Assembly: GCA_964036045.1 (NCBI GenBank)
Contig: OZ038379.1
Span: forward strand, 71,486,001 to 71,550,000
Reading direction: 5' to 3'
Length of the DNA: 64,000 nucleotides
DNA from: Eutreptiella sp. 'Long Island Sound 2002'
Lineage: Eukaryota > Protista > Euglenida
The stretch's first letter is position 1; the number at the start of each line of letters is the position of its first letter. The notes beneath the pieces are model-generated. The model was not told the origin of the DNA, made no database searches, and was given only the letters and a program-made list of their open reading frames with translations. The translations under genes were made by a program, and so were the position numbers. This document shows positions 17,270 through 56,600 of this stretch, piece after piece.

Positions 17270-17301
17270 GCCCGCGCTTCAAGCGCGGGCATTTACACTA
17301 G
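17270..17301 (+). terminator. Helitron 3' terminal signal: 10-bp inverted repeat, 7-nt spacer, CTAG (representative copy)
   Basis: GCCCGCGCTT-C-AAGCGCGGGC-ATTTACA-CTAG. A subterminal hairpin plus CTRR is the established Helitron 3' end. Confidence 0.95.
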
Positions 17302-23500: not shown

Positions 23501-24683
23501 AGGTTGAGGAATGCAAAATGGAGGTTGGTGTAGGACATTCGGAATACAACAGAGCGATTACGTGGCTACGTACTGCGTACTACGTACTGCGGCCTTGGAT
23601 GGTCGAGTGTGGCTTCGGCCCAACTCCGATTTCCATGGGCAGCCCAGCCTGGAAATCGGTGATCCTTCCGCCAAGGTGGGTTGTCATGTGCCCTTTGATC
23701 GGGGCTGCCCTTCGTGGGTAAGAGCCGAACCGCTAGGAGGGTTGGGAAATCACGTGGAAGTTACCTCCGCCTTTTGGTGGTAGGGGTGAACACGAGATGG
23801 AAACCTCCTGTAAGTCGGGCATGACGCGCAACTTCCAATTGCCAGTTTGTAAGGTAAAATGACCAGTTTGCAATCCATTCACCAGTTGTGGGTCCAGTTG
23901 GCCCAATTTTCAAAATAGACAAAAAAACAATACAAAAGCCTTGTCTTTTTGTTTGCAAAATGTCCGTGACCCCGTCCGTGACCCCGGGCCGCCTCCACAC
24001 GCAAAGGTCAGCACCACGCAGGATGTCGAAATAAGGAACATTACACCACATCTGCAACCATCTCCATTACTGTGCCTGATTGCCAGTGCGCTTATTCTCG
24101 GTGGAATCATTGGATGCTGTGCCGATCGTCTCACCCTCTGTGCGATGTAACCACATCACCTGGTGGACGGCATGCTACCCCAAGGCACCAGGCCTGGATT
24201 CTCCATTCCCCTCTTTGCGTTTGGTGGAATGCTGTGTGCCATTGCAGCTTTGCTTGGGATTTCTTTGGGGACAGGATGGATGGTCGGGCCCCACATGTGT
24301 TTGTGGAATGATCCTGTCTCTGACGAATGCATTCAAGACTTCCCTTGGACCCTTTCTCTCCATAGGCGGTGGTGCCCATCAGCTTCTCACCACCCTTTGA
24401 CCTTCCTCTTCCTCCTTGCCCTAACCTTCCCTCTCCCCTCCCCTTTCCCTTCCCTTGGCCTTTCCCTCTGTAGGCCACCGTGCCCATCGGCCTCACCACA
24501 CTCCAATGTGCTATGCATACAAGGCTATGTACGCCCCAAATACAACCAATCACTAAACATCATTCCGAGCAAAAAAACTCTAGTGCACATCCAATGTACT
24601 ATGCATACAAGGCCACACTGAACAGTCTGGTTCTTGCCATTATTGTTTCGATTTCTTCTTTTTCAAGGTTGATTTGTTGCGCC

Positions 24684-30248: not shown

Positions 30249-31142
30249 TTTCGGCCGTCGTCCGTTGCCTTGCTGGATGACGTGTGGCTCCACTCGACAC
30301 CGGCGTGTGTCTTGTTCACATTCCATTTACATCTGAAACCAACCGTTTTCTACATATATTTGAAACCAATCCTCACCTTGAGCCTTGCCCTAACCCTAAC
30401 TACAACTTTGGTGCTAAGTCAACCTCTATCCCTAACGGCGCAGCCGCTGACAATGTACATTATGCCGTACAAGCCGTGTTAGTGTAGGAACATGTGCTTG
30501 GGGCGACGCCAGCAAGTAGGCAAACGCTTTGAACCTTGTATGATGCGAGATTCAACTTTCATGTAGCTATTGTCTGTTGGCATTCTTGTTGGTGTGTGGG
30601 TGAACTTGCCTCCAAAGTGAATATTGTCAAGGGTCTATTTGCCTGAACATATGTTTGGTCCCATTGAATAGCAAAACAATTTTCAAACGCAATTATTTGC
30701 CACCTTGTGTCTGGTAAACACCTTCATTCCCTTCGGGTAAGGAAGTTGGTCATAATTCTTTTCAGGTTCTCCTAAAGAGCAATGGCTTGCTACTATAAGC
30801 CCGTCAATTTTCAAAGCCTCGACAACTTCCAAGTACAATTGAAGCAGGCGGCGTTACGTGGTGCCTTTAAACTGTCCTCCTCATTACTTTTTTTTTTTCA
30901 AAATTCGTTAGCTACAATGCTACAAACATGCAAACAGCGAATACTTTACCGCAAAAAGGATAATGCCCATTAGAAGTGTTTTGCGTCCACCTAATAGATG
31001 TTGCACTTTGCAACGTGGTAAAAATCCATTTGCAACACTCCATTCAACGAAAGGTACGGATTCCTCAAAGGGGCCAAATTCATGAGTATAGCTGCCCTGT
31101 TGTCGGTACGGCCCGCGCTTCAAGCGCGGGCATTTACACTAG

Positions 31143-33920: not shown

Positions 33921-34431
33921 TTTTATTATATTTAATTGTGCTATGGTTCGTTCGTTCGTTCGTTCGTTCGTTCGTCGTCGTCGTCGTCGTCGTTCGTCAT
34001 ACCCAAAAAATCCTCCCAATTGTGCACGCTGCTGCTGGCGCGCGCGCGTGCTGACTGTGGAAATTTTGGATTTGCAAATGCGATGCCTGGGAATTTGAGA
34101 TTTGGAAATGTAAAGTTTTGGATTTGCAAATGCGATGTTTGGGAATTTTAGATTTGCAAATGTAATTTTGTTTTTCGAATGTTGATGCGGAGCATTTAGG
34201 GTTTTGCTGTAGGTGGTACTGGTACTGATCCGGCGGCCGGCCCGCTAACGGCTTGCGGTTCCGCTCTCCAGTGCGGTTCCAATTATCGGGCCCTTTCCAA
34301 AGAAGTAGTGACAGCGTTGCGACGTCAGAGGATGATGTATTTTGGTGACATTTTACCGTTTAGGGTGTATTATTTTTGGAATTTATAATTTTTGGATACA
34401 CGATTCTTCGTTTGTCCTGGTTACATGCAGA

Positions 34432-34887
34432 GGTGACAAGTATGTATTCTTGTTGATCGAAGTCGCACTATTGCGTGCAAGATTTGGTGAAACCACAACC
34501 CTGTCGTCTGAAACGCAGATTCATCACTGGTTCGTACGATAGAAGTTGCAAAGTATGGGATACTATGACAGGTATGCTGTTGAGTTGCGCGAGATTGTCT
34601 TCGGGCTTTGTGTTGACGTGGTGAGTTCTACTGCTGCATCTCCTGCTGCCGGTCACTGCTGCAGCACGGATTTAGATGCCTTGACCAACGACATAGTGCG
34701 CTCAGAGGCGTTGATTTCCGAGGCCCGGAAGCCGCAAGTTCCGAAGCTGCTCGAGAAGCTGGTGGCTCGTATGACCTGCGATCGGAAGCAGCTTTTCTAT
34801 CTGTTTAAGATGCTTCGTGCCCACAGCTTGCCTTTGACAAGCTGTGCCTTCAACAAGTCTGGTGATAAGTATGTATTCTTGTCGAAG
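34432..34887 (+). pseudogene. DAW1: Captured DAW1/ODA16 (WDR69) fragment: exon B 34519-34571 lies before exon A 34665-34868
   Basis: Exon A: [62 protein letters not shown]. Exon B: FITGSYDRSCKVWDTMTG. Together they match recalled DAW1 (FYLFKVLRAHILPLTN.AFNKSG..FITGSYDRTCK.WDT) with a compatible phase-2 intron. Confidence 0.85.
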
Positions 34888-37800
34888 ACCTGGGGCGACT
34901 CCGCGGACAACAGCCACCAGGATCTGCACTGTCCCTGATGTATTCTCAAGCTGGTGTTCATTACGGTCGTGCTATGCTGTGTAACACTGGCACGCGGAAG
35001 GTATGCGTTGCCACACGAGCCGTTTGTGGTGTCCTCGCAGCAAGGCCGCCTGGTTGTGCCTTTCTGCAAAAGTAGTAGCAAGCGCTTTGCGTGGTGCACC
35101 ACCTCCGTGTGTCCAGGGGCGATGTAGTCGAAGTCGGATATGTGGACGAACAACAGTGCGACTCCAATGCAAATTTGGTGCTGGGTTGCATCGATACCGC
35201 CTCCAGGTTTTTCCCACTTGATATTAACTGTACCTGATTGTCAGTGAAACGTTTCTCCCTTCTACCTTGCACTTGCCTTGCCCGGCGGTGGACTTATCCA
35301 GTGACACCCCTCTATCGTAGCTTTTCACCGTGTGCGCGTCAGGGTTGGTCATATTCGTCAGTTCTCAAAGGATTTGAGGGGGTTTGTTGGTTGCTGGTTC
35401 ACCAGTTGCTTAATGTTTCAGAAATTCGGGACATAGGCCACCAAGTACAAGTGGTACCCAGTTGCAAAACACGCAAACTATGTTCACGAACAAGAAACCA
35501 ACCTCAGTTTCAACGGCCCAAGCAGGGTATAAGCTACAATACAACGAATGAATAGACATGTATGCCAAACAAGAAATGCGGAGCAGACCATAAGGTCGCA
35601 CGAAGTCGTGAGGATCCTTTGTTTGTGAGCCAGCGGTTGTTTAATTCCTCGAGATTCACGGTCTTTCAAGAAGACACACTCTTTTCACACTGTGCAGTGC
35701 AATTACCTCACTTGCATTCGACTCTTCATGTGTTCCCTTCTGTGATTCCTAAGGAGGTCGACCCCCCCCCAGTTGGAGCGAAACATTGTTGGTGGCAACG
35801 TAGAGATTGTCATTCACGAGCTTGTTAATATTTTTGTTGGTATTGGCAGCTTTCCCAGTGCCAACAGATCACTTTTTTGTACTTTTGGTGGACGCCCGTT
35901 GTTGACCCTTTTTTGCCAATGCCGAAATGGGGTTTTCAAGGCACTGGGGGACTTCACAAGGACAAGCTCGTGACGGCCTCAAAATGTCCCCGTAACCCTC
36001 CGACCTGCGGAGGGGACGGCGAAGCAGAACGCGGTGATCACAAACAAAGTAAGCAAGCCTATTACTTCACACACAGTTTTGGGCCCAATTCTCCCATTCT
36101 TTGGAAATAGAAGAAAAAATTGCCCTGTGATGCAACTCGGCATGGTAATTTGCAGGTGTTCTTTGCATGATCCGTTTTTACAGAGCTCCAACGGACGGCA
36201 TTGCTGCGGTCAAGACCCAAATGTCGCACATCTCGGTCTCGCTATACCTACTCATGTTACCTCTTCCATTCAGGAAGGTCGGTGAATTTTGCAAGAGGAC
36301 AAGGGATTGAGCAGCTTTGCATTCTTTGCCTTTTTTTTCCTCTCGCCAACAGCTGCTTTTATTTCACACAGTTGAACCCGAGGATATCAAATTGGAGAGT
36401 TTGGATGGCCAGTACCACGAGGAAAACCTTTCCAGGTCAATTGTGGCGGTGGAGATCATTACCCTGCTGGACCGCATCAGACCCGAGCAAGGAGGGCTTG
36501 AGGGTCCCAACTGGAGTTACCATGGCATGCTGCTCTGAGGGTCCCAACTGGAGTTACCATGGCATGCTGCTCTGGGTGGATCGTGGAGTACACGCTAAAT
36601 TCCACGCGACATATGTTGGAGGTGCTTCTGATCGCGTGTTCGTGCCCTGGACATCTGCCTGCAGTGATCCGCATTGCTCTGGTGGGGGATGGGGGGGGGT
36701 GGTTCAATGGTGCATTTCAAACAAGTTTGAGTGCCTGAGGTGCAGTAAGGTTGCTTGTCCTCTGCGCGTTCTCATTTGAGCTGCACAGCACACCCTCATA
36801 GATCAATTGGATGGGGTATGCTGGTGTCTTTGGCCCTGTAATTTTGGCACTCGCCAGTTCCCTCCATGTCTTGGCACTGCTTGTTATTTCCTCCCCATTC
36901 AGCCCAGATTGTGTTCTGTATCATCTCAGCAGCACATGATTGCTGAAGTTGAATTCTTTTCTCCTTGACCACCTGCATCGCTCTGGCAAATCGTATACGT
37001 AATTGGTTCAGACTTTTGCTTATGGCGGGTGGCACTGGAGTCAAGGGGGTGGGAACGAGCTGGATTCAGCACCTGTGGGTGCCAGGTTTTGGGTTTCACG
37101 GCTATTCGCAATGGGGAGGGGGAAGGGCTCTGCATGGGTGAGCATCAGGCTCAGACCCCCCCGCCCCTGCTTATATCAGTTGGGGGTTTTGGGTCATCAT
37201 GATTTGCAGACTTCTGTCTGCCGTTTGCTCTCAAACAGAGGTGCTTCGCTGGTTGGGTAACTCATTCCCTGTGCATGTATGCCGACACCATGCAAAAACA
37301 GTTTTGTGGCTATGGGGCGGTGATTGGTGGTCTTGACAAAGCCAAGCAGGCAGCCAGCCTCCAGGATTCGACGGTGCATCCACGCACAGTGTTTGTGAAG
37401 GGCTGTCATTTCCCTGCTTTTCATAGGTTCGCCAGTTACACAGTGGTTGAAGAAAAGCATATTGATTTGCCTCCTGAACCTAAACCTGAGCCCCTTGCTG
37501 AGATGAAGAAGGACGATGAACCCATGGCAGAGGACGGCGAGGAAACCAAAGAGGACGGGCTAGCAGAAGAGGCTGCTGCTGAGGAAGAGGCTGCCCCTGC
37601 CACCGAGGAAGAGGCTGTTGCTGAAGAGGCTGCTGCTGAGGAGGCTCCAGCCGCAGAACCCGACACGGAGATGACGGACGCTGCGGCTGAAAATGGGGAG
37701 GCTGAGGCGTAAAAGGAAGTCTATTTGGTTCTTGCAGTCGTGGCCATTATGGCACATGAACTATGAAATTGGATCTGATTTATCAATGGCCAGGACAGTC

Positions 37801-40800
37801 GTTGTGGGATTCAAATGTGAATGTGTGCTTTGTACGTTTTCATTAAAATCTGCCCAATGCAAATTGCCTGCTGCTCTGTAGTTTAGATCCTGAGCTATGT
37901 GGGCTTTTGCAATCCAGGGTGTGGAGTGCCCGCAGTTGATGGATGTTTGAGCGATGCACAAGTGCAACATGGATTTCATGTACACCATGGGCTGCAGCAC
38001 CCTGAAGGGTAGGTCAGACCTGGGGTTGACCTGGGTGTCTGGAGTTGCCCGCCACCCTGAAGCTGTCCTGATGGCCTGTATGGGTAGATTCCCCACTCTG
38101 TGGGATGGACAGTGGATGGAATGGCCAGCGCTCCTCCAGCCCCGGCTACTCAGGGCTATTTACCTTGATAGGTGCAGAGCAGTAAGTGACGCGCTGAAAT
38201 TCTATGATCCCCTCACACTTGCAATCAAACAAAACCAGAAAAAATAGCATGCAAAAACAGCAAGCCACACACAAACTATGACATGCAAACCCATTGGACT
38301 GGCGCAAAAAACTGAAACTGACTACTTATTTACAACGCCACCTCAGTGAAAGCATCGAAATAGATTAAGATTCACACCACTACTCAAAGGGAGGGGGCCT
38401 ACCAACAAGCAACAATCAACAATTTTGGGGGTGTCAATTTTTTTCTGCAAATAGTTGGTACGGGAGGAAGAGCAAGGTGCACAACCCAAATACGTAAGTA
38501 GTGCATAAGTGGAGTTTTTGAGTTGAAATGTTTTTGTGTGGAAGTGGTTACTTACATGCGTCCCAATGAGGGCTGCTGGCTAGAGAAAATAGCTACCCCC
38601 CAAGAGAAGGACACTGGGTTCTGAGTTGCTTAATTGTGGATGATTTTACAATGGGTGCTATTTAATGCTATTCTCTGCATGGTCCCCACAATAATTGCTG
38701 CTATGTTCCGGCTTGGTGTTAATAGTACATTTTCATGGGCGTTAGAAGTGTGTTTCACGTACGGCATGGCAAACGCAATCATTGGAGCAAAGACTTGGAG
38801 TGTTCAGGCCTGTTCCGCTGTCGAGCAGCACAATTCACATCATTCGTGCAGAAGCGCATTCCGTATCGTGAGTATGTGCCTGATGTTGGAGGACGCTTGG
38901 TCACGAAGTGTTGTGCTTGCTAAGCAGGATAGTTCCGTTGATGTGCTTGGCCGAAGCTGGCTTATGTCGTTACTCCATTGCCTGAGATTGCGTTTGTGAG
39001 GTGAGATACGCTCTTTCCAGTGATATTGCACTGCTGCCAAATTGAGACCTCTTGCACTAGATGTCCGGGCCCTTGGTCCAATCTCAATTCAAGTGCAAGT
39101 TGGTGGTTTGAGATATGGGCTCTGTTAAACACATTCATGTTGCAGCAGAAGTGGGTCTGGATGTCCGGTCCTTTGGTCCAATTTCAATTCAAGTGCAAGT
39201 TGGTCGTTTGAGATATCGGCCCTGTTCAACGCATTCATGCTGCAGCAGAAGGGTGTGTGGCTGCACAATCCTGGCCACCATGGTTTTCATTGAAATGTTT
39301 CTCTTTGTCAGTGAATCTGCCATTCCATCATTTTGGTTAAACGAATGCAATTTCGTGATGTATTCTTATGTTTTGAAGGTTCAGTAGGGACATTCATGCT
39401 CACTGAATTGATGTCGGATTTGATTTTCTGTTGTTGCTGTCCGTGACCATTGCTTTTTTTTTTTGGTGAAGCAGCACAAGGTCAAAGGGTTATAGATCAC
39501 GAAAGTTCCACATCACGAACCATTATAGCCACTGGCATGCGGTCTTTTGAAAACGACACTTGGCTGGGGTAGGTTGAGGAATGCAAAATGGAGGTTGGTG
39601 TAGGACCTTCGGAATACAACAGAGCAATTACGTGGCTACGTACTGCGTACTACGTACTGCGGCCTTGGATGGTCGAGTGTGGCTTCGGCCCAACTCCGAT
39701 TTCCATGGGCGGCCCAGCCTGGAAATTGGTGATCCTTCCGCCAAGGTGGGTTGTCATGTGCCCTTTGACCGGGGCTGCCCTTTGTGGGTAAGAGCCGAAC
39801 CGCTTGGAGGGTTGGGAAATCACGTGGAAGTTACCTCCGCCTTTTCGTGGTAGGGGTGAACACGAGATGGAAACCTCCTGTAAGTCGGGCATGACGCGCA
39901 ACTTCCAATTGCCAGTTTGTAAGGTAAAATGACCAGTTTGCAATCCATTGACCAGTTGTGGGTCCAGTTGTTGTGAAAGTACCGATTTTGTGATGCCTGG
40001 TGTCCCACACTCCTTGTGCTACCCGTTGCCTGCAATATGGGCTAAATCAACAAGGAAAGTGTGTTATTGTACTGAACAACCAATGCAATCTCGATTGGTT
40101 TTGACCGATATCATACCTAGCAATTGTTATTGCATTGTCGGCACGCAACGGTGCTTTGAAGCATTTCGTTTACACCTCCGCGGCGTGTTGAAAACACGGT
40201 CCTGAACAATCGTTTCTAGGTGTGCTGCCTCAATTTGTGCTTTTTCGCAACGGGCTAATCTCTAGGCTATACATGATTCGTCTGAGTGGTTACAACTGTT
40301 CAAATAATTTTCACCGCAAATGAGAACGATAAATAGACCGGCCCATTGGACCTTGGACGGTTGATCACAACTATAGCATCAAACTGCGTGACCGGTTACA
40401 ACCGTTCAAAAAATTTGAAGAAAGTATTTACACGGCAAATGACAAACACAAACGGACACGTCAATAGGTATTTGGATAGTTGATCACAACTACAACATCC
40501 AGCGAATGTCTGCTGGCGATGTACAATTCAATGTGTAGTTGTGGCGGTGGCACATTCCAATGTGCCTTTTAGTGAAGGCTTACTTGGCGAATGACAATTA
40601 AGAAGGCACAGCGACTAGGTGTAAAGGATGAAGTGGTAGGGGCAGGATGCCATGATAGCATTCCGAGGTTTGCCGTATGTATACTCAATCACTGGACATC
40701 ATTCCAATGTGCTATGCATACAAGGCCAGGTACGCCCAAAATACAACCAATCACTAAACACCATTCCAAGAAAAAAAATCCCAGTGCACATCCAATGTGT

Positions 40801-40884
40801 TGTGCATACAAGGCCACACCCAACAGTCTGGTTCTTGCCATTATTGTTTCCATTTCTTCTTTGTCAAGGTTGATTTGTTGCGCC

Positions 40885-43800
40885 ATGTTGCCTGCATTAT
40901 CCAACCATGACGCGGAAAGAGTGCATGCTTTCGTACAACAAAATATGCACTATTATCCCATTTTCAACCGTTGGATGGATGCAACTCAAAAGCGGATTAC
41001 GGGTCGTCTTTTCTTTTGGCAAGCAGAAGACCACTATGCTTGGAGGGATCTTATGTCAGCAATGATGCAATCGGGGATAGTTACGGCCGTGCATGAAGCT
41101 TCCTCGCCGTCAATATCATCCAATCCTCCATCTGTACACACTTCAAACGTTCAACCTGGCCCATTGCCGTCACCGCTTGTGGCAACAAGCTGTACCGCAT
41201 CCACTCCAAATGTACAATTTGAGGGGCCAATCCCAACGCCCGGGTCATTGTCCTTCACCATGCCTCTAAGTTCCAGTGCCGTTGCGTCCCCGGGTGTCCA
41301 TCGCATGGCGGTCAACTACACACCAACACCTTTACTATCCGAAGCTCAGCCATACTTCCCTCCATATCTGCCAATGCCCCCACAAAACGTTCCCAACCAG
41401 CCTTGGTTTGATCCATCTTCCCACCAAAGCTTTGCGAGGATTCCGCCACCTGGCTCAGGCCAATTAGAGTTGAACCCACATATGAACCCCACCTTTGGCC
41501 AGCCGGCTAGCAGTGCATCACGTGCACTCGGATCTGCAAATGTGATCGCACAACCCATTTCTCCGGACACGCATGGCGCAGAAGCACGGAAAAAGCGACA
41601 ACGAGAACCACATTTGGATTTAAATGCAGGGGCAAGCGATGATGGACACGCCGAAAAACGAGCACGATGCACGCAAAGCAAGGAAGAAATCGATAAGCAA
41701 AGACGCGAACGATATCAAGAGGTCAGGGACGAAGTCAATAAGCAAAGACGAGAACGATATAAACAACTGTACGCGCAAAAGAAGGACAGCATCAATGCGC
41801 GAAGACGGGAGCGATATCAAGAGGCAAACAAGGACAACATCAATGAGCAAAGACGGCAGCGATATCAAGAGGCGGACACGGACAACATCAATGAGCACAG
41901 ACGGCAGCGATATCATGAGGCGGACAAGGACAACATCCACGAGGAAAGACGGCAGCGATATCAAGAGGCGGACAAGGACAACATCAATGAGCAAAGACGG
42001 GAGCGATATCCAGAGGCAAAGGACAACATCAATGAGCAAAGACGGGAGCGATATCCAGAAGCAAAGGACAACATCAATGAGCAAAGACGGGAGCGATATC
42101 CAGAGGCGTAGGCGCAGAACAAGGACAACATCAATGAGCAAAGACGGGAGCGATATCCAGAGGCGTACGCGCAGAACAAGGACAACATCAATGAGCAAAG
42201 ACGGGAGCGATATCCAGAGGCGTACGCGCAGAACAAGGACAACATCAATGAGCAAAGACGGGAGCGATATCCAGAGGCGTACGCGCAGAACAAGGATAAC
42301 ATCAATGAGCAAAGACGGGAGCGATATCCAGAGGCGTACGCGCAGAACAAGGATAACATCAATGAGCAAAGACGGGAGCGATATCCAGAGGCGTACGCGC
42401 AGAACAAGGACAACATCAATGAGCAAAGACGGGAGCGATATCCTGAGGTGTACACGCAAAACAAAGACAACATCAATGAGCAAAGGCGAGCGCGGAGGGC
42501 TCATGCATTGGAAATGCAAAGGTTGCGCCACGAATGCTTGTTTAGATCAAAGGCCGATGAGGATATTACCCACATCAAGCGCCACGTCCTTGACAACATG
42601 GAAGTGGAGTGTGAACATTGTCACGCTTTACGTTGGAGTGCCGAGCGACCTACCATTTGTTGCCGTGGCGGACAAGTGAAACTTCCCATTCTGCTTGATC
42701 CACCGGAACCGCTCAAAACCCTATTGACCGAGCAAACTGGACAGGGACGCCATTTTCGGCAAAACATTCGGAAGTACAACTCAGCCTTCACCATGGCCTC
42801 TCTTGAAGCAAATATCGACATGCGGTTCACGAAAGGGCCAATGGCGGGTGGCCCTCACCAGTTTCGGGTGTCTGGAAATGTGTATCACCGCATGGGTCCC
42901 CTGACGCCGGGAGAAAATCAACCACCCCGGTTTGCACAGGTGTACATTTTGGAAACCGAAGATCAACTGAAGGCATGGCAGGGACTTCCACTGTCATCGG
43001 AATTGAGAGAGGATCTACTCCGCCAACTGGGAGCTATGCTGAACACACACAATGCCTATGTACAGGTTTGTCAACACGCGGCTGAACTTGAGGTCCCCAA
43101 CGTGACCATCTTGCTGCGGTGCAATGCCAACGTTGACCCACGCACCTACAATGTTCCCCGTGTCAGCGACATTGCAGCATTCATTCCGGATGGCAGTCAT
43201 GTCGCCGCTCCTCGTAGCATTGCGGTCCGCATGCATGGGGGTGGGGTCAAGCGTATCACCGACCTGAACTCTGCCTACGATCCTTTACACTTTGTACTCC
43301 TTTTTCCGCGCGGTGAGCAAGGCTGGACAACTGACATTCCCCTGAATGTCACTTATCGGCGTCAGCGCGGCGCACGCGAAAATCTAGAGCAAGGCAATGC
43401 CCCAAAGGCCAAAAGCCGTCAGACGATTACAGCCCGAGACTTTGCCGCCTTCTACCTCATGCAACGTCCGGAATCGTACACTGGAAATTATTTGCAAAGA
43501 TGTCAAAAACTGTACGAAGAATACATCGTGGACCAGTACTGCAAAGTGGAATCTCAACGCTTGCAATATGTCTCTCAGAACCAGTCCAAATTGCGCACAC
43601 ATTTGTATTCGGGTGTTGAAGATGTCACCAAAAAAGGTGATCGCGACGCTTCATCCGTTGGAAAGCGTGTAATTTTGCCGAGCTCTTTTGGCGGGAGTCC
43701 GCGCGCTCTTCATGCCGCTTTTCAGGATGGGATTGCTATTTGTAGCAAACGGGGCAAGGCAGACCTGTTCATTACCATGACAGCCAATCCCAATTGGCCG

Positions 43801-46747
43801 GAGGTGGAGGCCGCTCTACTGCCAGGACAAAAACCAAATGATCGTCCCGATTTGATCCCCCCCGTTTTCAAGCTGAAGCTGCAGTCTTTGTTAGAAGACC
43901 TTCTAAAGGATGGCTGTCTCGGTCGCACAGTCGGCCACATGTATGTCATTGAATTTCAAAAACGTGGGCTACCACATGCACATATCCTGGTTATCTTTGC
44001 CGCCGGCTACAAATTGCTCACACCTGACGATTATGATTCCGTCATTTGTGCTGAGATTCCAGACGAGGATGAGGACCCGGAGCTGTACGAGATTATTGCA
44101 AAATGCTACATGCACGGTCCATGCGGTTCCCTCGACGCGAACTGTGCATGCATGAAGGATGGACATTGTAAGAATCGGTACCCGAAGGAATTTCAAGATG
44201 TGACCACGAACAGCGAGAATGGATATCCTCTTTATCGCCGTCGCAACAACGGCCGCACTATAACATGCAGGGGGCATAAACTTGATAATCGTTGGGTGGT
44301 TCCACATGTGCGTGCGTTGGCCAGAAAATATGCTTGCCACATCAACGTGGAGTACTGTGCCTCACTTGCGGCTATCAAATACTTGCACGAGTATATTTAC
44401 AAGGGGTTTGACCGGGGCGATGCCACCCTACGAGACGATCAAGTCAACGAAGTTGTGGAGTTCGTGGAGGGCCGGTACATTCGCACATCTGAGGGAGTGT
44501 GGAGACTATTGGCATTTGACTTACATGAGCAATTTCCCGCGGTATTGCGGCTACCAGTTCACTTAGAAAACCAGCAGCACGTTCGATGGCACGACCAACA
44601 ACATCTTACTGACATCGTTGGAGATGGACCCCCCGACACACCACTAACCGCTTGGTTGAAGTCCAACGCCAAGCCGGATCATGCTTTCGGTAAGCACTTG
44701 CTGTACACCGACTATGCCGAGCGGTTCACGTATGATGCAAAGACCAAAGAATGGAAAATTCGGAAGAGAGGACTAAACACGGTAATTGGTCGCATGTACT
44801 TTGTGCTCCCGAATGCGGGCGAAGTATACTTTCTCCGACTATTGTTACACCATGTTGCTGGTGCAACCTCTTTCCAAGATTTGCGTACCGTTAACGGCAA
44901 CCTATGTGCCACTTTTCAAGAAGCATGCGTACGTCGCGGCCTTCTAGAAGATGACACCGAGTGGGAACAATGTCTGAACGAGGCAAAAATGTACTACAAA
45001 TCCGGCCGACTACGACTTCTTTTTTGCACCATCTTGGAGTACAACTCCCCAAAAGATCCCTACAAGCTGTGGTTAAAGTACGAGGAAGAGTTCATCAGCG
45101 ACATTCGTTGGAATTGGCAACGTACACATCCTGGCACAAAAAACGAGCCAACGCATGCCGAGATTGTGAATGAAGCCCTATTGCGGGTCGAGGGCATGCT
45201 GCAAAAGCAAGGACTTTCTCTTCGCTCGTTTCCTTCTATGCCGTTTCCAGTGCCCAGTGCAATGTCCCATAAGCCTGGCGGTCACGACGAAGGGTATGAT
45301 GTTGCACACTTGCGACGTGTTGTTGAGGATGGTGTGCCAACCTTGACAGAGCAACAACGCAACATCTACGACCAGGTCACTGCGAGTACACATTTGGACA
45401 ACAACGACGCAAAGTGCTTCTTTATTTTGAGTTGCGGTGGTTGCGGAAAGACTTACGTGAACAATTTAATGTTGGCCTATGTACGGAGTCAGGGACGACG
45501 GGCGATTGCGGTTGCCTCAAGTGGCATCGCTTCTCTTCTTTTGGATGATGGTTCAACTGCGCACTCAGCTTTTGGTATTTCGCCGCAAAAGGGCGGAACA
45601 TCATCCATTCCTGTGGAGAGCAAACGTGCCGCGGAACTTCATGAGTGCCAACTCATTGTGTGGGATGAGGCTCCCATGGCAGACAACGATTGCTTCCGTG
45701 TATTGGATGAATTGCTCAAAGATATCATGGGTGCCAATGATGAAGCACTGCGACTTGTTCCCTTCGGGGGCAAGACCGTCGTCATGACGGGGGATTGGAG
45801 GCAAATTTTGCCCGTTGTACCTCGTGGCTCTCGAGCGGCCGTGATAGCAGCTACCCTCAAGAAATCCTACCTCTGGCCCTATTTCAAAACACTCGAATTG
45901 ACGACCAATATTCGGGTGCGAGGCACTTCTCAAGTTGACGATGACGAGACCCGTGAGTTTGCACGCTGGTTGCTATCCGTTGGGGAGGACACCATCGACA
46001 ATCCGTTGCCCATACCAGAAGACATGTTGATCCCAAGCGATGACCCCTGGCCACTGGTAAACCACGTCTTTCCAACCATGAGCAAGGAGGAATTTATGTC
46101 TGGTTGTATCCTGGCACCCCGAAACCAAGAAACCAATGCTATCAACGAAGCGGCGCTGCAGAGCTTGCCAGGAGAGGAGTTTTTATTGTGTTAGTGCGGA
46201 CTATTTTGGTGCCGATTGCCAAGAAGATGCAGCTACCTATCCTCCGGAACTCTTGAACAAGCTCGAGCCTCCGGGCATGGCACGTCACGAGCTCAAGCTT
46301 AAGGTAGGGGCCCCTATCATTCTACTGCGCAATCTCAACCGTACGGAGGGGTTGATGAATGGAACACGCTTGTTGGTAACAAAGTGCCTAGATTTCAACA
46401 TCCAAGCAGAAATTGTCTCAGGTCCCCGAAAAGGAAACGTTGTGCTCATTCCACGCATCAATTTGACGTGTGGTGATTCTGAAATGTTGTCGATCAGATT
46501 TATTAGGCGACAATTTCCAATAAAGTTGGCTTTCGCCTTGACGATTAATCGTTCCCAAGGGCAGTCGTTCGAAAGGTTGGGGTTGCTCTTGGAGAATCCT
46601 GTTTTTGCCCATGGACAGCTATATGTTGGCTTTTCCCGGGTTACCTCACGCCGTGGCGTTCGCGTCATTTTAGGGGAACGTGCTTGGGGGGATGTAACTA
46701 AGGAAGCAAACACTCCGAACATTGTATGGTCTGAAATTTTTCCTTGA
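40885..46747 (+). pseudogene. Disrupted RepHel of U3: in-frame TAG at 42109-42111 and +1 frameshift near 46180-46190
   Basis: ORFs 40591-42111 and 42448-46194 share a frame; the C-terminus continues in 46136-46747. All Rep and helicase motifs are present. Confidence 0.9.
41800..42490 (+). repeat. Expanded coding repeat in U3 RepHel: about 4 x 48 bp, 2 x 45 bp and 7 x 57 bp
   Basis: Units RYQEADKDNINEQRR., RYPEAKDNINEQRRE and RYPEAYAQNKDNINEQRRE counted in the sequence. Confidence 0.92.
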
Positions 46748-47638
46748 TTTCGGCTCGTCCGTTGCCTTGCTGGATGACGTGTGGCTCCACTCGACACCGG
46801 CGTGTGTCTTGTTCACGTTCCATTTACATCTGAAAACAACCGTTTTCTACATATATTTGAAACCAATCCTCACCTTGAGCCTTGCCCTAACCCTAACTAC
46901 AACTTTGGTGCTAAGTCAACCTCTATCCCTAACGGCGCACCCGCTGACAATGTACATTATGCCGTACAAGCCGTGTTAGTTTAGAAACATGTGCTTGGGG
47001 CGACGCCAGCAAGTAGGCAAACGCTTTGAACCTTGTATGATGCGAGATTCAACTTTCATGTAGCTATTGTCCGTTGGCATTCCTGTTGGTGTGTGGGTGA
47101 ACTTGCCTCCAAAGTGAATATTGTCAAGGGTCTATTTGCCTGAAAATATGTTTCGTCCCATTAAATAGCAAAACAATTTTCAAACGCAATTATTTGCCAC
47201 ATTGTGTCTGGTAAACACCTTCATTCCCTTCGGGTAAGGACGTTGGTCATAATTCTTTTCAGGTTCTCCTAAAGAGCAATGGCTTGCTACTATAAGCCCG
47301 TCAATTTTCAAAGCCTCAACAACTTCCAAGTACAATTGAAGCAGGCGGCGTTACGAGGTGCCCTTAAACTGTGTTCCTCATTACTTTTTTTTTTCAAAAT
47401 TCGTTAGCTAGAATGCTACAAACATGAAAACAGCGAATACTTTACTGCAAAAAGGATAATGCCCATTAGAAGTGTTTTGCGTCCACCTAATAGATGTTGC
47501 ACTTTGCAACGTGGTCAAAATCCATTTGCAACACTCCATTCAACGAAAGGTACGGATTCCTCCAAGGGGCCAAATTCATGACTATAGCTGCCCCGTTGTC
47601 GGTACGGCCCGCGCTTCAAGCGCGGGCATTTACACTAG

Positions 47639-50600
47639 TTATTATATTTAATTGTGCTATGGTTCGTCGTCGTTTGTCGTCGTCGTCGTCGTCGTCGTTC
47701 GTCTTCCCCAAAAATCTCTTATTATATTTAATTGTGCTATGGTTCGTCGTTTGTCGTCGTTCGTCGTCGTCGTTCGTCGTCGTTCGTCATACCCAAAATC
47801 GTCGAATCGTTCGTCATACCCCAAAAATCCTCCCAATCGTGCACGCTGCTGCTGGCGCGCGCGCGTGCCCGTCAAATGGCATCTGGCGGATTTGCGATTT
47901 CGATTTCTGGCACGAGAAATCGATCTGAAATCATGGAATCACGTGTTTTAAAAATCTGTATGTACTGTACAATCGATTATCCGGGTATCCGCACGAATCA
48001 TCCCACCTGTTGACTTTTGGCGATTTTAGCCAACAGGCAGCAGTGGTGACAGTTCTTTCGCTTATAGAGTACGGGATATGAGGTTTGAGACATGAGTCAT
48101 GAGGTACGGGATACGAGGTACGGGATATGCGGTATGTTGTACACAGTGTGAGGTATAGGTGATGTGTTTGGAAATATGGATTATGCGAATCGCGGTGTGA
48201 AATGTGGTGTCAGAGTACAGTTCAAGAGGGGTAAATTTCACTCATAGAGTACGGGATATGATGTTTGAGTGAGGTACGGGATACGAGGTACGGGATATGC
48301 GGTATGTTGTACACAGTGTGAGGCATGGGTGATGTGTTTGGAAATATGGAATATGCGAATCGCTGTGTGAAATGTGGTGTCAAAGTACAGTTCAAGAGGG
48401 GTATATTTCACTCATAGAGTACGGGATATGATGTTTGATAGAGTACGGGATATGAGGTTTGAGACATGAGTCATGAGGTACGGGATACGAGGTACGGGAT
48501 ATGCGGTATGTTGTAAACAATGTGAGGTATGCGCGATGTGTTTGGAAATATGGATTATGCGAATTGCGGTGTCAAATGTGGTGTCAGAGTACAGTTTAGG
48601 AGGGGTAAGTTCACTCATAGAGTACGGGATATGATGTTTGAGACATGAGTCATGTGGCACGGGATGTGAGGTACGGGACATGAGGTGTGTTGTATTGGGT
48701 TTGCGAAATGCGGTGCGTTGTGAGATATGGCGCTATGGTGATATGGTGATATGGCCCGCGCTTCAAGCGCGGGCATTCGCACTAGTTATCTCTTATTATA
48801 TTTAATTGTGCTATGGACGTCGTTCGTCGTCGTCGTCGTCGTCGTTCGTCTTCCCCAAAAAATCCGCCCAATTGTGCACGCCGCTGCTGGCGCGCGCGCG
48901 TGCCCGTCAAATGGCATCTGGCGGATTTGCGATTTCGATTTCTGGCACGAGAAATCGATCTGAAATCATGGAATCACGTGTTTGAAAAATCTGTATGTAC
49001 TGTACAATCGATTATCCGGGTATCCGCACGAATCATCCCGCCTGTCGACTTTTGGCGATTTTAGGCAACAGGCAGCAGTGGTGACAGTTCTCTCGCTTAT
49101 AGAGTACGGGATATGAGGTTTGAGACATGAGTCATGAGGTACGGGATACGAGGTACGGGATATGCGGTATGTTGTACACATTGTGAGGTATGGGTGATGT
49201 GTTTGGAAATATGGATGATGCGAATCGCGGTGTCAAATGTGGTGTCAGAGTACAGTTTAGGAGGGGTAAATTTCACTCATAGAGTACGGGATATGATGTT
49301 TGAGTGAGGTACGGGATACGAGGTACGGGATATGCGGTATGTTGTACACAGTGTGAGGTATGGGTGATGTGTTTGGAAATATGGATTATGCGAATCGCGG
49401 TGTCAAATGTGGTGTCAGAGTACAGTTTAGGAGGGGTAAGTTTCACTCATAGAGTACGGGATATGATGTTTGAGACATGAGTCAGGTGGCACGGGATATG
49501 AGGTACGGGACATGAGGTGTGTTGTATTGGGTATGTGAAATGCAGTGCAGTGTGGGATATGGTGCTATGGTGATATGGTGATATGGCCCGCGCTTCAAGC
49601 GCGGGCATTCGCACTAGTTAATATATTTAATTGTGCTATGGTCGTCGTTCGTCGTCGTCGTCGTCGTCGTTCGTCTTCCCCAAAAAATCCGCCCAATTGT
49701 GCACGCTGCTGCTGGCGCGCGCGCGTGCCTGTCAAATGGCATCTGGCTGATTTGCGATTTCGATTTCTGGCACGAGAAATCGATCTGAAATCATGGAATC
49801 ATGTGTTTTGAAAATCTGTATGTACTGTACAATCGATTTTCCCGGTATCTGCACGAAAAATCCCGCCTGTTGACTTTTGGCGATTTTAGCCAACAGGCAG
49901 CAGTGGCGCTCTCGCTTATAGAGTACGGGATATGAGGTTTGAGACATGAGTCATGAGGTACGGGATACGAGGCACGGGATATGCGGTATGTTGTACACAG
50001 TGTGAGGCATGGGTGATGTGTTTGGAAATATGGAATATGCGAATCGCGGTGTCAAATGTGGTGTCAGAGTACAGCTTAGGAAGGGTATATTTCACTCATA
50101 GGGTACGGGATATGATGTTTGATAGAGTACGGGATATGAGGTTTGAGACATGAGTCATGAGGTACGGGATACGAGGTACGGGATATGCGGTATGTTGTAC
50201 ACAGTGTGAGGCATGGGTGATATGTTTGGAAATATGGATTATGCGAATTGCGGTGTCAAATGTGGTGTCAGAGTACAGCATAGGAGGGGTAAGTTTCACT
50301 CATAGAGTACGGGATATGATGTTTGAGACATGAGTCATGTGGCACGGGATATGAGGTACGGGACATCAGGTGTGTTGTATTGCATATGCGAAATGCGGTG
50401 CGGTGTGAGATATGGTGCTATGGTGATATGGTGATATGGCCCGCGCTTCAAGCGCGGGCATTTGCACTAGTTATATTTAATTGTGCTATGGTTGTTCGTC
50501 GTCGTCGTCGTCGTCGTTCGTCATACCCAAAAAATCCGCCCAATCGTGCACGCTGCTGCTGGCGCGCGCGCGTGCCCGTCAAATGGCATCTGGCGGATTT

Positions 50601-53600
50601 GCGATTTCGATTTCTGGCACGAGAAATCGATCTGAAATCATGGAATCATGTGTTTTGAAAACCTGTATGTACTGCACAATCGATTATCCGGGTATCTGCA
50701 CGAATAATCCCGCCTGTTGACTTTTGGCGATTTTAGCCAGCAGGCAGCAGTGGCGCTCTCGCTTATAGAGTACGGGATATGAGGTTTGAGACATGAGTCA
50801 TGATGTACGGGATACGAGGTACGGGATATGCGGTATGTTGTACACAGTGTGAGGCATGGGTGATGTGTTTGGAAATATGGATTATGCGAATCGCGGTGTC
50901 AAATGTGGTGTCAGAGTACAGCTTAGGAGGGGTATATTTCACTCATAGAGTACGGGATATGATGTTTGATAGAGTCCTGGATATGAGGTTTGAGACATGA
51001 TCATGAGGTACGGGATACGAGGTACGGGATATGCGGTATGTTGTACACAGTGTGAGGTATGGGTGATGTGTTTGGAAATATGGATTATGCGAATTGCGGT
51101 GTCAAATGTGGTGTCAGAGTACAGCTTAGGAGGGGTCAATTTCACTCATAGAGTACGGGATATGATGTTTGAGACATGAGTCATGTGGCACGGGATATGA
51201 GGTACGGGACATGAGGTGTGTTGTACTCGGTATGTGAAATGCGGTGCAGTGTGAGATATGGTGCTATGGTGATACGGTGATATGGCCCGCGCTTCAAGCG
51301 CGGCCATTCGCACTAGTTATTATATTTAATTGTGCTATGGTTCGTTCGTCGTCGTCGTCGTTTGTCGTCGTCGTCGTTCGTCATACCCAAAAAATCCTCC
51401 CAATTGTGCTCGCTGCTCCTGGCGCGCGCGCGTGCCCGTCAAATGGCATCTGGCGGATTTGCGATTTCGATTTCTGGCACGAGAAATCGATCTGAAATCA
51501 CGGAATCACGTGTTTTGAAAACCTGTATGTACTGTACAATCGATTATCCGGGTATCCGCACGAATCATCCCGCCTGTTGACTTTTGGCGATTTTAGCCAA
51601 CAGGCAGCAGTGGTGACAGTTCTTTCGCTTATAGAGTACGGGATATGAGGTTTGAGACATGACTCATGAGGTACGGGATACGAGGTACGGGATATGCGGT
51701 ATGTTGTACACAGTGTGAGGTATAGGTGATGTGTTTGGAAATATGGATTATGCGAATCGCGGTGTCAAATGTGGTGTCAGAGTACAGCTTAGGAGGGGTA
51801 TATTTCACTCATAGAGTACGGGATATGATGTTTGATAGAGTCCTGGATATGAGGTTTGAGACATGATCATGAGGTACGGGATACGAGGTACGGGATATGC
51901 GGTATGTTGTACACAGTGTGAGGTATGGGTGATGTGTTTGGAAATATGGATTATGCGAATTGCGGTGTCAAATGTGGTGTCAGAGTACAGCTTAGGAGGG
52001 GTAAATTTCACTCATAGAGTACGGGATATGATGTTTGAGACATGAGTCATGTGGCACGGGATATGAGGTACGGGACATGAGGTGTGTTGTACTCGGTATG
52101 TGAAATGCGGTGCAGTGTGAGATATGGTGCTATGGTGATACGGTGATATGGCCCGCGCTTCAAGCGCGGGCATTCGCACTAGTTATTATATTTAATTGTG
52201 CTATGGTTCGTTCGTCGTCGTCGTCGTTTGTCGTCGTCGTCGTTCGTCATACCCAAAAAATCCTCCCAATTGTGCTCGCTGCTGCTGGCGCGCGCGCGTG
52301 CCCGTCAAATGGCATCTGGCGGATTTGCGATTTCGATTTCTGGCACGAGAAATCGATCTGAAATCACGGAATCACGTGTTTTGAAAACCTGTATGTACTG
52401 TACAATCGATTATCCGGGTATCCGCACGAATCATCCCGCCTGTTGACTTTTGGCGATTTTAGCCAACAGGCAGCAGTGGTGACAGTTCTTTCGCTTATAG
52501 AGTACGGGATATGAGGTTTGAGACATGACTCATGAGGTACGGGATACGAGGTACGGGATATGCGGTATGTTGTACAGAGTGTGAGGTATGGGTGATGTGT
52601 TTGGAAATATGGATTATGCAAATCGCGGTGTGAAATGTGGTGTCAGAGTACAGCTTAGGAGGGGTAAATTTCACTCATAGAGTATGGGATATGATGTTTG
52701 AGTGAGGTACGGGATACGAGGTACGGGATATGCGGTATGTTGTACACAGTGTGAGGTATGGGTGATGTGTTTGGAAATATGGATTATGCGAATCGCGGTG
52801 TCAAATGTGCTGTCAGAGTACAGTTTAGGAGGGGTGAGTTTCACTCATAGAGTACGGGATATGATGTTTGAGACATGAGTCAGGTGGCACGGGATATGAG
52901 GTACGGGACATGAGGTGTGTTGTATTGGGTTTGCGAAATGCGGTGCGGTGTGAGATATGGTGCTATGGTGCTATGGTGATATGGCCCGCGCTTCAAGCGC
53001 GGGCATTCGCACTAGTTATCTTCTTATTATATTTAATTGTGCTATGGTTCGTCGTTCGTCGTCGTCGTCGTCGTCGTTCGTCATACCCAAAAAGTCCTCC
53101 CAATCGTGCACGCTGCTGCTGGCGCGCGCGCGTGCCCGTCAAATGGCATCTGGCGGATTTGCGATTTCGATTTCTGGCACGAGAAATCGATCTGAAATCA
53201 TGGAATCATGTGTTTTAAAAATCTGTATGTACTGTACAATCGATTATCCGGGTATCTGCACGAATAATCCCGCCTGTTGACTTTTGGCGATTTTAGGAAA
53301 CAGGCAGCAGTGGCGACAGTTCTCTCGCCTATAGAGTACGGGATATGAGGTTTGAGACATGAGTCATGAGGTACGAGATACGAGGTACGGGATATGCGGT
53401 ATGTTGTACACAGTGTGAGGCATGGGTGATGTGTTTGGAAATATGGATTATGCGAATGGCGGTGTCAAATGTGGTGTCAGAGTACAGTTTAGGAGGGGTA
53501 AATTTCACTCATAGAGTACGGGATATGATGTTTGAGACATGAGTCAGATGGCACGGGATATGAGGTACGCGACATGAGGTGTGTCGTATTGGGTATGTGA

Positions 53601-56600
53601 AATGCGGTGCAGTGTGAGATATGGTGCTATGGTGATATGGTGATATGGCCCGCGCTTCAAGCGCGGGCATTCGCACTAGTTAATATATTTAATTGTGCTA
53701 TGGACATTCGTTGTCGTCGTCGTCGTCGTTCGTCATACCCAAAAAATCCTCCCAATTGTGCACGCTGCTGCTGGCGCGCGCGCGTGCCTGTCAAATGGCA
53801 TCTGGCGGATTTGCGATTTCGATTTCTGGCACGAGAAATCGATCTGAAATCATGGAATCACGTGTTTTAAAAATCTGTATGTACTGTACAATCGATTATC
53901 CGAGATCCGCACGAATCATCCCGCCTGTTCACTTTTGGCGATTTTAGGCAACAGGCAGCAGTGGCGACAGTTCTGTTGCTTATATAGTACGGGATATGAG
54001 GTTTGAGACATGAGTCATGAGGTACGGGAAACGAGGTACGGGATATGCGGTATGTTGTACACAGTGTGAGGTATGGGTGATGTGTTTGGAAATATGGATT
54101 ATGCGAATCGCGGTGTCAAATGTGGCGTCAGAGTACAGTTTAGGAGGGGTATATTTCACTCCTAGAGTACGGGATATGATGTTTGAGTGTTGTACGGGAT
54201 ACGATGTACGGGATATGCGGTATGTTGTACACAGTGTGAGGTATGGGTGATGTGTTTGGAAATATGGATTATGCGAATTGCGGTGCCAAATGTGGTGTCA
54301 GAGTACAGTTTAGGAGGGGTAAGTTTAACTCATAGAGTACGGGATATGATGTAGGAGACATGAGTCATGTGGCACGGGATATGAGGTACGGGACATGAGG
54401 TGTGTTGTATTGGGTATGTGAAATGCGCTGCAGTGTGAGATATGGTGCTATAGTGATACGGTGATATGGCCCGCGCTTCAAGCGCGGGCATTCGCAGCAG
54501 TTAATATATTTAATTGTGGTATGGACGTTCGTTCGTTCGTTCGTTCGTTCGTTCGTTCGTTCGTTCGGTCGTTCGTCGTCGCTCGTCATACCCCAAAAAT
54601 CCTCCCAATCGTGCCCGCTGCTGCTGGCGCGCGCGCGTGCTGCCTGTGGAAATTTTGGATTTGCAAATGCAATTTGGATTTGCTTTTTGGAATTGCAAAT
54701 GCGATGTCTGGGAATTTTAGAATTGCAAATGTACTTTTGTTTTTTGAATACTGAAACTGTGCGCAGCATTTAGGGTTTTGCTGCAGGCGGTAACGGATCC
54801 GGCCGGTCCGCAAACCGCCCGGTCAAGCGTTCTGATGCACTTGATGGGTAGTGATGCAGTCCAATGATGACAATGACTGATGATGCATGCTATTAATATA
54901 TTTAATTGTGGTATGGACGTTCGTTCGTCGTCGTCGTCGTCGTTCGTCATACCCAAAAAATCCGCCCAATTGTGCACGCTGCTGCTGGCGCGCGCGCGTG
55001 CCCGTCAAATGGCATCTGGCGGATTTGCGATTTCGATTTCTGGCACGAGAAATCGATCTGAAATCATGGAATCATGTGTTTTGTAAATCTGGATGTACTG
55101 TACAATCGATTATCCGAGTATCTGCACGAATCATCCCGCCTGTTGACTTTTGGCGATTTTAGCCAACAGGCAGCACTGGCGACAGTTCTCTCGCTTATAG
55201 AGTACGGGATATGAAGTTTGAGACATGAGTCATGAGGTACGGGATACGAGGTACCGGATATGCGGTATGTTGTACACAGTGTGAGGTATGGGTGATGTGT
55301 TTGGAAATATGGATTATGCGAATTGCGGTGTGAAATGTGGTGTCAGAGTACAGTTTAGGAGGGGTAAGCTTCACTCATAGAGTACGGGATATGATGTTTG
55401 AGACATGAGTCAGGTGGCACGGGATATGAGGTACGGGACATGAGGTGTTTTGTATTGAATATGTGAAATGCGGTGCGGTGTGAGATATGATGCTATGGTG
55501 ATATTGTGATATGGCCCGCGCTTCAAGCGCGGGCATTCGCACTACTGGTTCGTCGTTTGTCGTCGTTCGTCGTCGTCGTTCGTCGTCGTCGTTCGTCATA
55601 CCCAAAATTGTTGTCGTTCGTCATACCCAAAATTGTCGTCGTTCGTCATACCCAAAAAATCCTCCCAATTGTGCACGCTGCTGCTGGCGCGCGCGCGTGC
55701 TTGTCAAATGGGATCTAGCGGATTTGCGATTTCGATTTCTGGCACGAGAAATCGATCTGAAATCATGGAATCATGTGTTTTAAAAATCTGAATGTACTGT
55801 ATAATTGATTATCCGGGTATCTGCACGAATAATCCCGCCTGTTGACTTTTGGCGATTTTAGCCAACAGGCAGCATTGGCGACAGTTCTCTCGCTTATAGA
55901 GTACGGGATATGAGGTTTGAGACATGAGTCATGAGGTACGGGATACGAGGTACCGGATATGCGGTATGTTGTACACAGTGTGAGGCATGGGTGATGTGTT
56001 TGGAAATATGGATTATGCGAATCGCGGTGTCAAATGTGGTGTCAGAGTACAATTTAGGAGGGGTAAATTTCACTCATAGAGTACGGGATATGATGTTTGA
56101 GTGAGGTACGGGATACAAGGTACGGGATATGCGGTATGTTGTACACAGTGTGAGGTATGGGTGATGTGTTTGGAAATATGGATTATGCGAATCGCGGTGT
56201 CAAATGTGGTGTCAGAGTACAGCTTAGGAGGGGTAAGTTTCACTCATAGAGTACGGGATATGATGTTTGAGTGAGGTACGGGATACAAGGTACGGGATAT
56301 GCGGTATGTTGTACACAGTGTGAGGTATGGGTGATGTGTTTGGAAATATGGATTATGCGAATCGCGGTGTCAAATGTGGTGTCAGAGTACAGCTTAGGAG
56401 GGGTAAGTTTCACTCATAGAGTATGGGATATGATGTTTGAGTGAGGTACGGGATACGAGGTATGGGATATGCGGTATGTTGTACACAGTGTGAGGTATGG
56501 GTGATGTGTTTGGAAATATGGATTATGCGAATTGCGGTGTCAAATGTGGTGTCAGAGTACAGCTTAGGAGGGGTAAGTTTCACTCATAGAGTACGGGATA

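Follow-up and report, generated by a model that had tools for sequence, protein, structure and literature searches.

Members of the IS91 family are bacterial rolling-circle elements with an HUH-type transposase; they make no target duplication, form tandem multimers and use a target that resembles their own cleavage site. They are prokaryotic, carry no helicase fusion and insert at a tetranucleotide target that lies outside the element. Head-to-tail arrays of Helitrons are found in plants, bats and other organisms and are usually explained as rolling-circle concatemers (PMC5876387, PMC11934779, PMC12001565, PMC12628747), and nested Helitrons with multiple termini are known from maize (PMC3288121). 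For the Helitron arrays of plant centromeres, the rolling-circle model of Xiong et al. (2016), as outlined in PMC12628747 and PMC11934779, predicts units that are truncated and nearly uniform, with many 5′ ends but only one 3′ end. In PMC5148889, self-insertion at the 5′ end is proposed for the FoHeli elements of Fusarium from a few cases and is left undecided against rolling-circle replication; the model given there has nicking at the leftmost start mobilize chimeras with two 5′ termini. Repeated insertion of a transposable element into a single site yields tandems (McGurk and Barbash, as summarized in PMC12628747), and the chromosome-end Helitrons of Paramecium are site-specific (PMC13085455). 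Here we describe a head-to-tail Helitron array in the 2.28-Gb assembly of the euglenid Eutreptiella sp. 'Long Island Sound 2002'. The window is the whole stretch of 64,000 nt that was analyzed (contig OZ038379.1, here C2, positions 71486001-71550000), and the array fills it from approximately position 790 to the window end. The head-to-tail arrays of this family are probably built largely by insertion into the starts of the family's own copies, and the example from which we start is a group of three elements at window positions 48786-51316.

Results

Three junctions within one array

The 5′ terminus of the family (left terminal sequence, LTS) reads TC-TTA(T/A)T-ATATTTAATTGTGCTATGG in the window, where hyphens, here and below, mark the boundaries between parts. 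The 3′ terminus (right terminal sequence, RTS) consists of a hairpin, GGCCCGCGC-TTCAA-GCGCGGGC, followed by ATTCGCA and then by CTAG; the window contains 15 RTS, each ending in CTAG. When positions 49575-49617 were folded, the RTS hairpin had a 9-bp stem (−13.5 kcal/mol, z = −3.8), and its end lies 11 nt before the CTAG terminus. On every terminal and coding criterion tested, the window elements are canonical Helitrons. The parts of the group are the following.

48753-48785, forward strand: RTS of the upstream array member, ending ...GCACTAG (hairpin GGCCCGCGC-TTCAA-GCGCGGGC, ATTCGCA and CTAG)
48786-48788, forward strand: TTA, putatively the 5′ stub left by the resident R (the initial 3 nt of an LTS without TC), split from the R remainder at an A-T site
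48789-48790, forward strand: TC, a stub attributed to E2 or, alternatively, a second TC brought by E3 (basis: (TC)n stacks and a filled/empty pair of sites)
48791-49617, forward strand: E3, a complete non-autonomous Helitron of 827 bp, the innermost insert (TCTTATTATATTT ... hairpin ... CTAG)
49618-50470, forward strand: E2 body, 853 bp, without its TC (TTAATATATTT ... CTAG)
50471-51316, forward strand: R body, 846 bp, the remainder of the resident whose TTA would be 48786-48788 (TTATATTT ... CTAG)

The junctions read CTAG-TTA-TC-TCTTATT at 48786, CTAG-TTAAT at 49618 and CTAG-TTATATTT at 50471, base for base as a first-pass annotation of the window had given them. That annotation proposed that one element had entered an A-T site inside a resident 5′ terminus, that a second had entered the newcomer between TC and TT, and that removing them in turn would restore standard starts. 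In silico, deletion of 48791-49617 gave CTAG TTA TC+TTAATATATTT (CTAG-TTA-TC-TTAAT), a string present at several other loci, and deletion of 48789-50470 gave CTAG TTA+TTATATTT (CTAG-TTATTATATTT), the junction found most often genome-wide. Since both restored strings are present elsewhere, both inferred intermediates are real junction types. The proposed entry at A-T recurs as well: TTA^TTATATTT, with ^ marking the point of insertion, was found at least 63 times, in one orientation only and with remainders downstream. E3, E2 and R were mutually 93-96% alike.

We infer a non-autonomous resident R that already lacked its TC (junction CTAG-TTATTATATTT) and was struck between TTA and TTATATTT, so that TC and the bodies of E3 and E2 would now separate the R stub from its remainder. 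In the likeliest history, E2 would have entered R at TTA^TT, and E3 would next have entered E2 at TC^TT. That nested self-insertion took place, in some order, is very likely. The region is likely a depth-two nest of canonical Helitrons made by the route described, and the chances are even that E2 arrived in place first and E3 after it.

Recurrence and direction of the junctions

Genome-wide, 843 exact RTS-LTS junctions were found. Approximately two-thirds of the first 100 listed were CTAG-TTAWT, with no TC, and CTAG-TC was a minority. Open junctions, in which CTAG-TTA is followed by a complete TC start, numbered 63. All except four of these (59 of 63) read exactly TTA + (TC or TCTTA)n + TCTTAWT, and they included three- and four-level stacks (TTA-TCTTA-TCTTATT, TTA-TCTTA-TC-TCTTATT and TTA-TC-TC-TC-TCTTATT). 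Closing junctions, which carry the matching remainder (CTAG-TTATATTT), numbered 140.

Pairing was measured in 28 parsed ten-kb loci around opens, which held 40 opens, with within-array shuffles as the null. The very next junction was a closing for 15 of the 40 opens (6.55 expected, P about 1e-4), and a closing lay within three junctions downstream for 26 of them (13.8 expected); only four had a closing immediately upstream. A coordinate-only pairing on contigs C1-C8 (43 opens, including loci outside the 28 parsed) placed an exact closing ≤1 kb downstream of 15 opens vs. 3 upstream, and ≤2 kb downstream of 25 opens vs. 6 upstream. The stub-remainder pattern exceeds chance.

Assembly is difficult where long arrays consist of 90-99% identical units, and the junctions could be artefacts of near-identical repeats that were collapsed or mis-joined. 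However, dozens of loci spread over many chromosomes share the same grammar with different element pairs, and mis-joins are not expected to give complementary stubs and remainders. An assembly artefact is therefore extremely improbable.

Another explanation dispenses with terminal insertion. Concatemers or unequal crossing-over would have formed the arrays, slippage in TTA-TTA-TA would have formed the indels, and the match between the TTA gained at 48786 and the TTA missing at 50471 would be coincidental. Concatemers are the usual published account of Helitron arrays (PMC11934779, PMC12001565, PMC5876387). The string TTATTA is prone to slippage, and the leftmost start of the array carries an extra TTA (TCTTATTAAT, 786-795); tandem duplication is also real, as seen in a 13.8-kb pair with 99.986% identity and a CTAG-TC join and in a four-unit repeat at locus L015. 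Against this, the pairing of stubs with remainders is directional, the exact stub grammar holds for 59 of the 63 opens, multi-level stacks included, all inserts have complete termini, and independent element pairs occur at 14 loci. Concatemers are expected to consist of uniform units, whereas neighbors in the array are only 93-96% alike and of unequal lengths; near-identical units are found only in the two 13.8-kb copies and not in E3, E2 and R. The circle junction is CTAG-TC (PMC5876387), yet most of the junctions listed have no TC, and the window inserts are, by private substitutions, younger than their neighbors. We consider formation of the junctions without terminal insertion very unlikely.

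The terminal insertions were not copies of one event. In 14 adjacent open/closing pairs, inner elements measured 641-865 bp and hosts 649-1396 bp, nearest relatives differed, and co-paralogy was 0; because these are pairs of unrelated elements, the events are independent. Self-targeting, as first proposed from the window, is thus borne out by stubs and matching remainders that recur genome-wide, with the 14 adjacent pairs not being one copied composite. The string TTA-TC-TCTTATT of the window was present at only three other loci, where the elements were 86-95% identical to those of the window by position. The closest relatives elsewhere were 98.3% identical for E3, 99.3-99.4% for E2 and 97.5% for R. 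That the E3+E2 block might exist elsewhere as a pre-formed unit, which the first-pass annotation had considered, found no support: no second copy of the pair was found genome-wide, and the three other TTA-TC-TC loci carry different elements. Judged by these comparisons, the window block is not a copied unit.

Orientation was equally restricted. After CTAG-TTA, no reverse-orientation element was found genome-wide, compared with 63 in forward orientation; because AT is palindromic, a choice of target by the dinucleotide only would yield both orientations. The junctions thus follow a grammar that has a direction, is strand-specific and recurs across the genome. At locus L006 (~5580-5600, plus strand), plus and minus arrays meet tail to tail in CTAG-TTATATTTAA-CTAG, the last CTAG being read from the other strand. 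No other opposite-strand insertion into an LTS was seen in approximately 350 kb of arrays, and this one uses a different A-T site.

Target-site duplications were absent from all junctions. The T at +1 of the insertion sites was constant, and the base at −1 was variable: TTA^TT is an A-T site, and TC^TT, CTAG^T and GGAC^TA are C-T or G-T sites. Starts with a TC (TCTTAWTATATTT) were found after CTAG, after a TTA stub or after foreign flanks. Nearly all of the 100 TC-bearing starts listed are preceded by CTAG, by a stub or by (TC)n, and only a handful have non-Helitron flanks; the family is confined almost wholly to its own copies and their flanks. Some arrays stop directly before the first bases of a sister subfamily, TCTTTCTATTATTTTCAGACTGG, with or without its TC, at L002 7277 and L011 6749 and, on the minus strand, at L003 7149, L008 5353 and L010 9892, which indicates that the family also inserts into the 5′ terminus of the sister subfamily. 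Given the strict orientation and the few copies elsewhere in the 2.3-Gb genome, a short motif (T at +1, usually TTA) is insufficient as the target. Homing caused by recognition of the LTS, and not of a short motif, is moderately likely.

Proposed insertion between TC and TT

Stacks of TC stubs lie at the left edges of arrays ((TC)18 at window 752-787, (TC)8 at L009 and (TC)5 at L023), and CTAG-TC-TCTTAWT junctions occur among the TC-bearing starts listed. An empty and a filled site were also found. In the former (L033), a lone sister-subfamily Helitron in a foreign site begins with an intact GGAC-TC-TTTCTATT; in the latter (L032), a copy 99.4% identical to E2 lies between TC and TTTCTATT. The only array covered at both ends (L009/L008) had 8 TC stubs vs. 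9 TC-less starts in a hand count. The second entry of the first-pass annotation, at TC-TT, thus gains indirect support from the (TC)n stub stacks and from the filled/empty paralogous pair; its weaker side is the non-canonical C-T site and the two extra T at the filled site.

Ages, and the order of insertion

Private substitutions were counted against the six nearest sampled relatives, and 174 elements were scored. E3 and E2 each had 2, and an insert at 53029 had 0; R had 11-12 and the other neighbors 8-12. By this measure E3 and E2 are both younger than their host R, as nesting requires; in the comparison no inserts except those in the window stood out as young. The inner element had been predicted to be the youngest by divergence from its closest copy. 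This was not the case: the best other copies were 98% identical for E3, 99% for E2 (at least 7 copies, on several chromosomes) and 97% for R, the host being the oldest.

These values bear on a history that differs in its steps and keeps the same chemistry. Either E3 and E2 were joined at another locus and entered TTA^TT together in a single event, by read-through of the first CTAG, or E3, bringing two TCs from a (TC)n donor, came first and a TC-less E2 inserted later at CTAG^T. E2 is a member of the youngest subfamily (at least 7 copies at 99%), and the best match of E3 is 98%. Starts with an extra TC do exist (CTAG-TC-TCTTAWT junctions), composites are mobile as units (a junction shared by L023 and L028, on two chromosomes), and elements with two 5′ termini recur without their remainder, as in the Fusarium Helitron model (PMC5148889). 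The composite route, however, lacks a second E3+E2 copy, TTA-TC-TCTTATT being found at three other loci only and with different elements; an altered order faces equal private substitutions in E3 and E2; and the second route would need a TC-less element to move alone, which such elements are not known to do. Such a history is possible and, on balance, unlikely.

One more feature of the window is needed for the weighing of the nest.

53016-53679, forward strand: further insertion of the same kind, CTAG-TTA-TC-T-TCTTATT followed by a 651-bp element

Several observations weigh against stepwise nesting, E2 into R and E3 into E2, or against the grammar from which it is read. The private substitutions of E3 and E2 are tied, 2 and 2, and give no age order, and with no relative of E3 above approximately 98% and at least 7 of E2 at 99%, the inner element does not appear as the youngest. 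Of 25 sampled open/closing pairs, 14 had the younger element inside and 10 the older, with 1 tie (Wilcoxon, P = 0.31); we take this null result as a limit of the measure (small sample, later array duplication), yet it is a real gap. Thirteen of the 43 sampled opens had no closing inside the DNA retrieved, strict closings outnumbered strict opens (140 vs. 63), and at two of the three other TTA-TC-TC loci the order of closings differed from the prediction. Tandem duplication reshapes the arrays, so counts of stubs and remainders need not balance and offer no strict check of the grammar. The C-T and G-T sites differ from the canonical A-T target of Helitrons, the filled site at L032 has two extra T outside the model, and the junction at 53016 has one extra T that the model leaves unaccounted for.

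No TTATATTT remainder was found in the window after the 53016 insertion. Single extra T residues lie beside TC stubs at window 53016-53028 (TTA-TC-T-TCTTATT), at L032 46-56 (GGAC-T-TC-T-TCTTATT) and at L023 ~117-145 (GGGAC-T-(TC)5). They may reflect imprecise 5′ nicking.

Other features of the arrays

The units of the window fall into two size classes. Three are 13.7-13.8 kb long, and two of these have an intact RepHel open reading frame (ORF) of 1922 aa; the remaining units are non-autonomous, 650-1150 bp long, with internal 170/204-bp repeats as their core.

3462-17301, forward strand: autonomous Helitron copy, 13.8 kb, with an intact RepHel ORF at 10640-16408
17302-31142, forward strand: autonomous Helitron copy, 13.8 kb, with an intact RepHel ORF at 24480-30248

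The ORF at 10640-16408 (1922 aa) matched the Pfam domains Helitron_like_N (4.1e-53), PIF1 (7.4e-64) and Pif1_2B (1.4e-17). The two copies differ by 1 mismatch and 1 gap (99.986% identity) and meet in a precise CTAG-TC join at 17301/17302; the pair is a very recent tandem event. From its sequence, the 13.8-kb autonomous element may be active. The third large copy (33921-47638) was approximately 96% identical to the other two across the 3′ 5.7 kb; its longest ORF was 1248 aa (42448-46194), and its coding repeat was 57 bp, compared with 48 bp in the others. Before the first autonomous copy (3455-3470), the sequence reads GCACT-TCTTAAT, the upstream 3′ end being without the final AG of CTAG.

The left edge of the whole array is formed by a foreign terminal inverted repeat (TIR).

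733-787, forward strand: left edge of the array, with a 19-nt foreign TIR stub (733-751) and (TC)18 (752-787), followed by the first LTS

This leftmost LTS is the one with the extra TTA (TCTTATTAAT). Positions 733-751 are the tip of the TIR of a cut-and-paste transposon (GGGAATGGCTATGCAGGAC-TACGG...). The TIR motif was found at least about 350 times genome-wide, in plus/minus pairs whose outer flanks are 9-bp target duplications, and intact TIR ends continue ...GGAC-TACGGCTTAGG. The partner end of the window TIR lies 201.7 kb away (C2:71688431-71688463, locus L031), with the common flank GGGATGGGC. A search for the rest of the TIR after the RTS of the window's own family gave no match; once any RTS was allowed, the TIR rest was found to adjoin a Helitron 3′ end (CTAG-TACGGCTTAGGAC) 72 times, the RTS being of at least 5 variants, and some transposon copies were hit at both TIR ends. 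When the 752-bp flank to the left of the array was compared with all retrieved DNA by BLAST, it matched only itself. These sequences suggest that site-specific Helitron insertion at TIR position 19/20 seeds arrays. Once seeded in a TIR, arrays grow by insertion into Helitron starts. The (TC)18 tract fits a stack of TC stubs from successive after-TC insertions, with microsatellite slippage as an alternative.

Arrays were also shaped by other processes. The four-unit repeat in L015 is a higher-order repeat. The junction CTAG-AAGATA(TC)n..TCTTA-TCTTATT was found on two chromosomes (L023 ~5170-5215; L028, minus strand, ~1821-1866); here the edge of an array was taken along, six foreign bases included, which is what read-through of a 3′ end would give. 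At window 47639-47723, an 80-bp 5′ fragment (LTS to CCCCAAAAA) is directly followed by the TC-TCTTATT of a full element, and similar 80-bp double starts recur at other loci. The remainder expected if they had formed at an A-run-T site (CTAG-TCCKCCC, including CTAG-TCCGCCC) was found 0 times genome-wide. We therefore dropped the 80-bp double starts as nests formed in place and take them for chimeras that carry two 5′ termini and are mobile as a whole. Opens and closings are unbalanced because of tandem duplication, mobile composites and such double-start chimeras.

Discussion

The mechanism that we propose is integration, in one orientation, into the first five bases of a resident 5′ terminus: before TC, after TC or after TCTTA. 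RepHel would bind the top strand of the resident LTS as it does in initiation, nick on the 5′ side of a T (offset 0, +2 or +5) and join the incoming strand there, and the family's own origin would thereby serve as its attachment site. Arrays would grow by stacking, with stubs (TC, TCTTA, TTA) accumulating to the left and, to the right, a truncated 5′ terminus behind every CTAG; since an intact LTS arrives with every insertion, the target would be renewed. It is an evenly balanced question whether this lineage has turned its own 5′ terminus, and the sister subfamily a TIR position, into an attachment site, a recognized sequence in which integration is strand-specific and confined to fixed nucleotides and does not take place at just any AT. 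If so, most Helitron arrays in this genome would be products of homing integration and not rolling-circle concatemers, the arrays would be ordered stacks and their stubs a record of the order of arrival, and the family would offer a natural system for target selection by HUH/helicase transposases.

The junctions are direct sequence evidence that arrays grow as elements insert, time after time, into the 5′ termini of residents, and they point to a transposase able to use C-T and G-T sites beside its own origin. From them follow concrete predictions, open to test, on where in the LTS RepHel cleaves and transfers strands (offsets 0, +2 and +5). Sequence-specific target choice in a Helitron is relevant to transposon biology and to tool development. 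A literature search found no published description of such systematic Helitron self-insertion, which is not proof of absence. New here are the scale and the precision: insertions by the dozen, independent of one another and exact to the base, share one orientation and a few set offsets in the terminus of the family itself, and their stubs form stacks.

The family resembles canonical Helitron1-type elements (Helibat, Helraiser) in its RepHel protein (Rep + PIF1 helicase), 5′ TC, 3′ CTAG and subterminal 3′ hairpin, in the absence of a target-site duplication and in short non-autonomous derivatives that spread replicatively. The precise CTAG-TC join at 17301/17302 is like that of Helraiser circles. 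What sets the family apart from Helibat and Helraiser is its targets, the great majority of which are 5′ termini of its own copies, hit at fixed offsets and with a single orientation; of the three offsets, two are C-T or G-T sites and not A-T, and very few copies lie in non-Helitron DNA. With the IS91 family, the window Helitrons have in common an HUH transposase, the lack of target duplication, tandem multimers and a target like the cleavage site. The narrow, strand-specific target recalls the Helitrons of Paramecium, which use host telomere-type repeats, whereas Helitron 5′ termini are targeted here and a foreign TIR position is targeted by a related subfamily.

Like the plant centromere arrays, the arrays consist of head-to-tail, Helitron-derived units; unlike in the model for those arrays, each unit has its own hairpin and CTAG, neighbors are diverged, and most junctions listed have no TC. 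As in the tandems of McGurk and Barbash, a preference for an insertion site, and not recombination, makes dimers and arrays; those tandems belong to other element classes with duplicated target sites, whereas the site here is made by the element's own terminus and the target is regenerated each time. The 80-bp double starts, such as that at window 47639-47723, are like the chimeras of the FoHeli model. The FoHeli cases are few; in this genome, base-exact events number more than 60, and to these are added remainders that match, statistics that show a direction, insertion on one strand and stacks of several levels.

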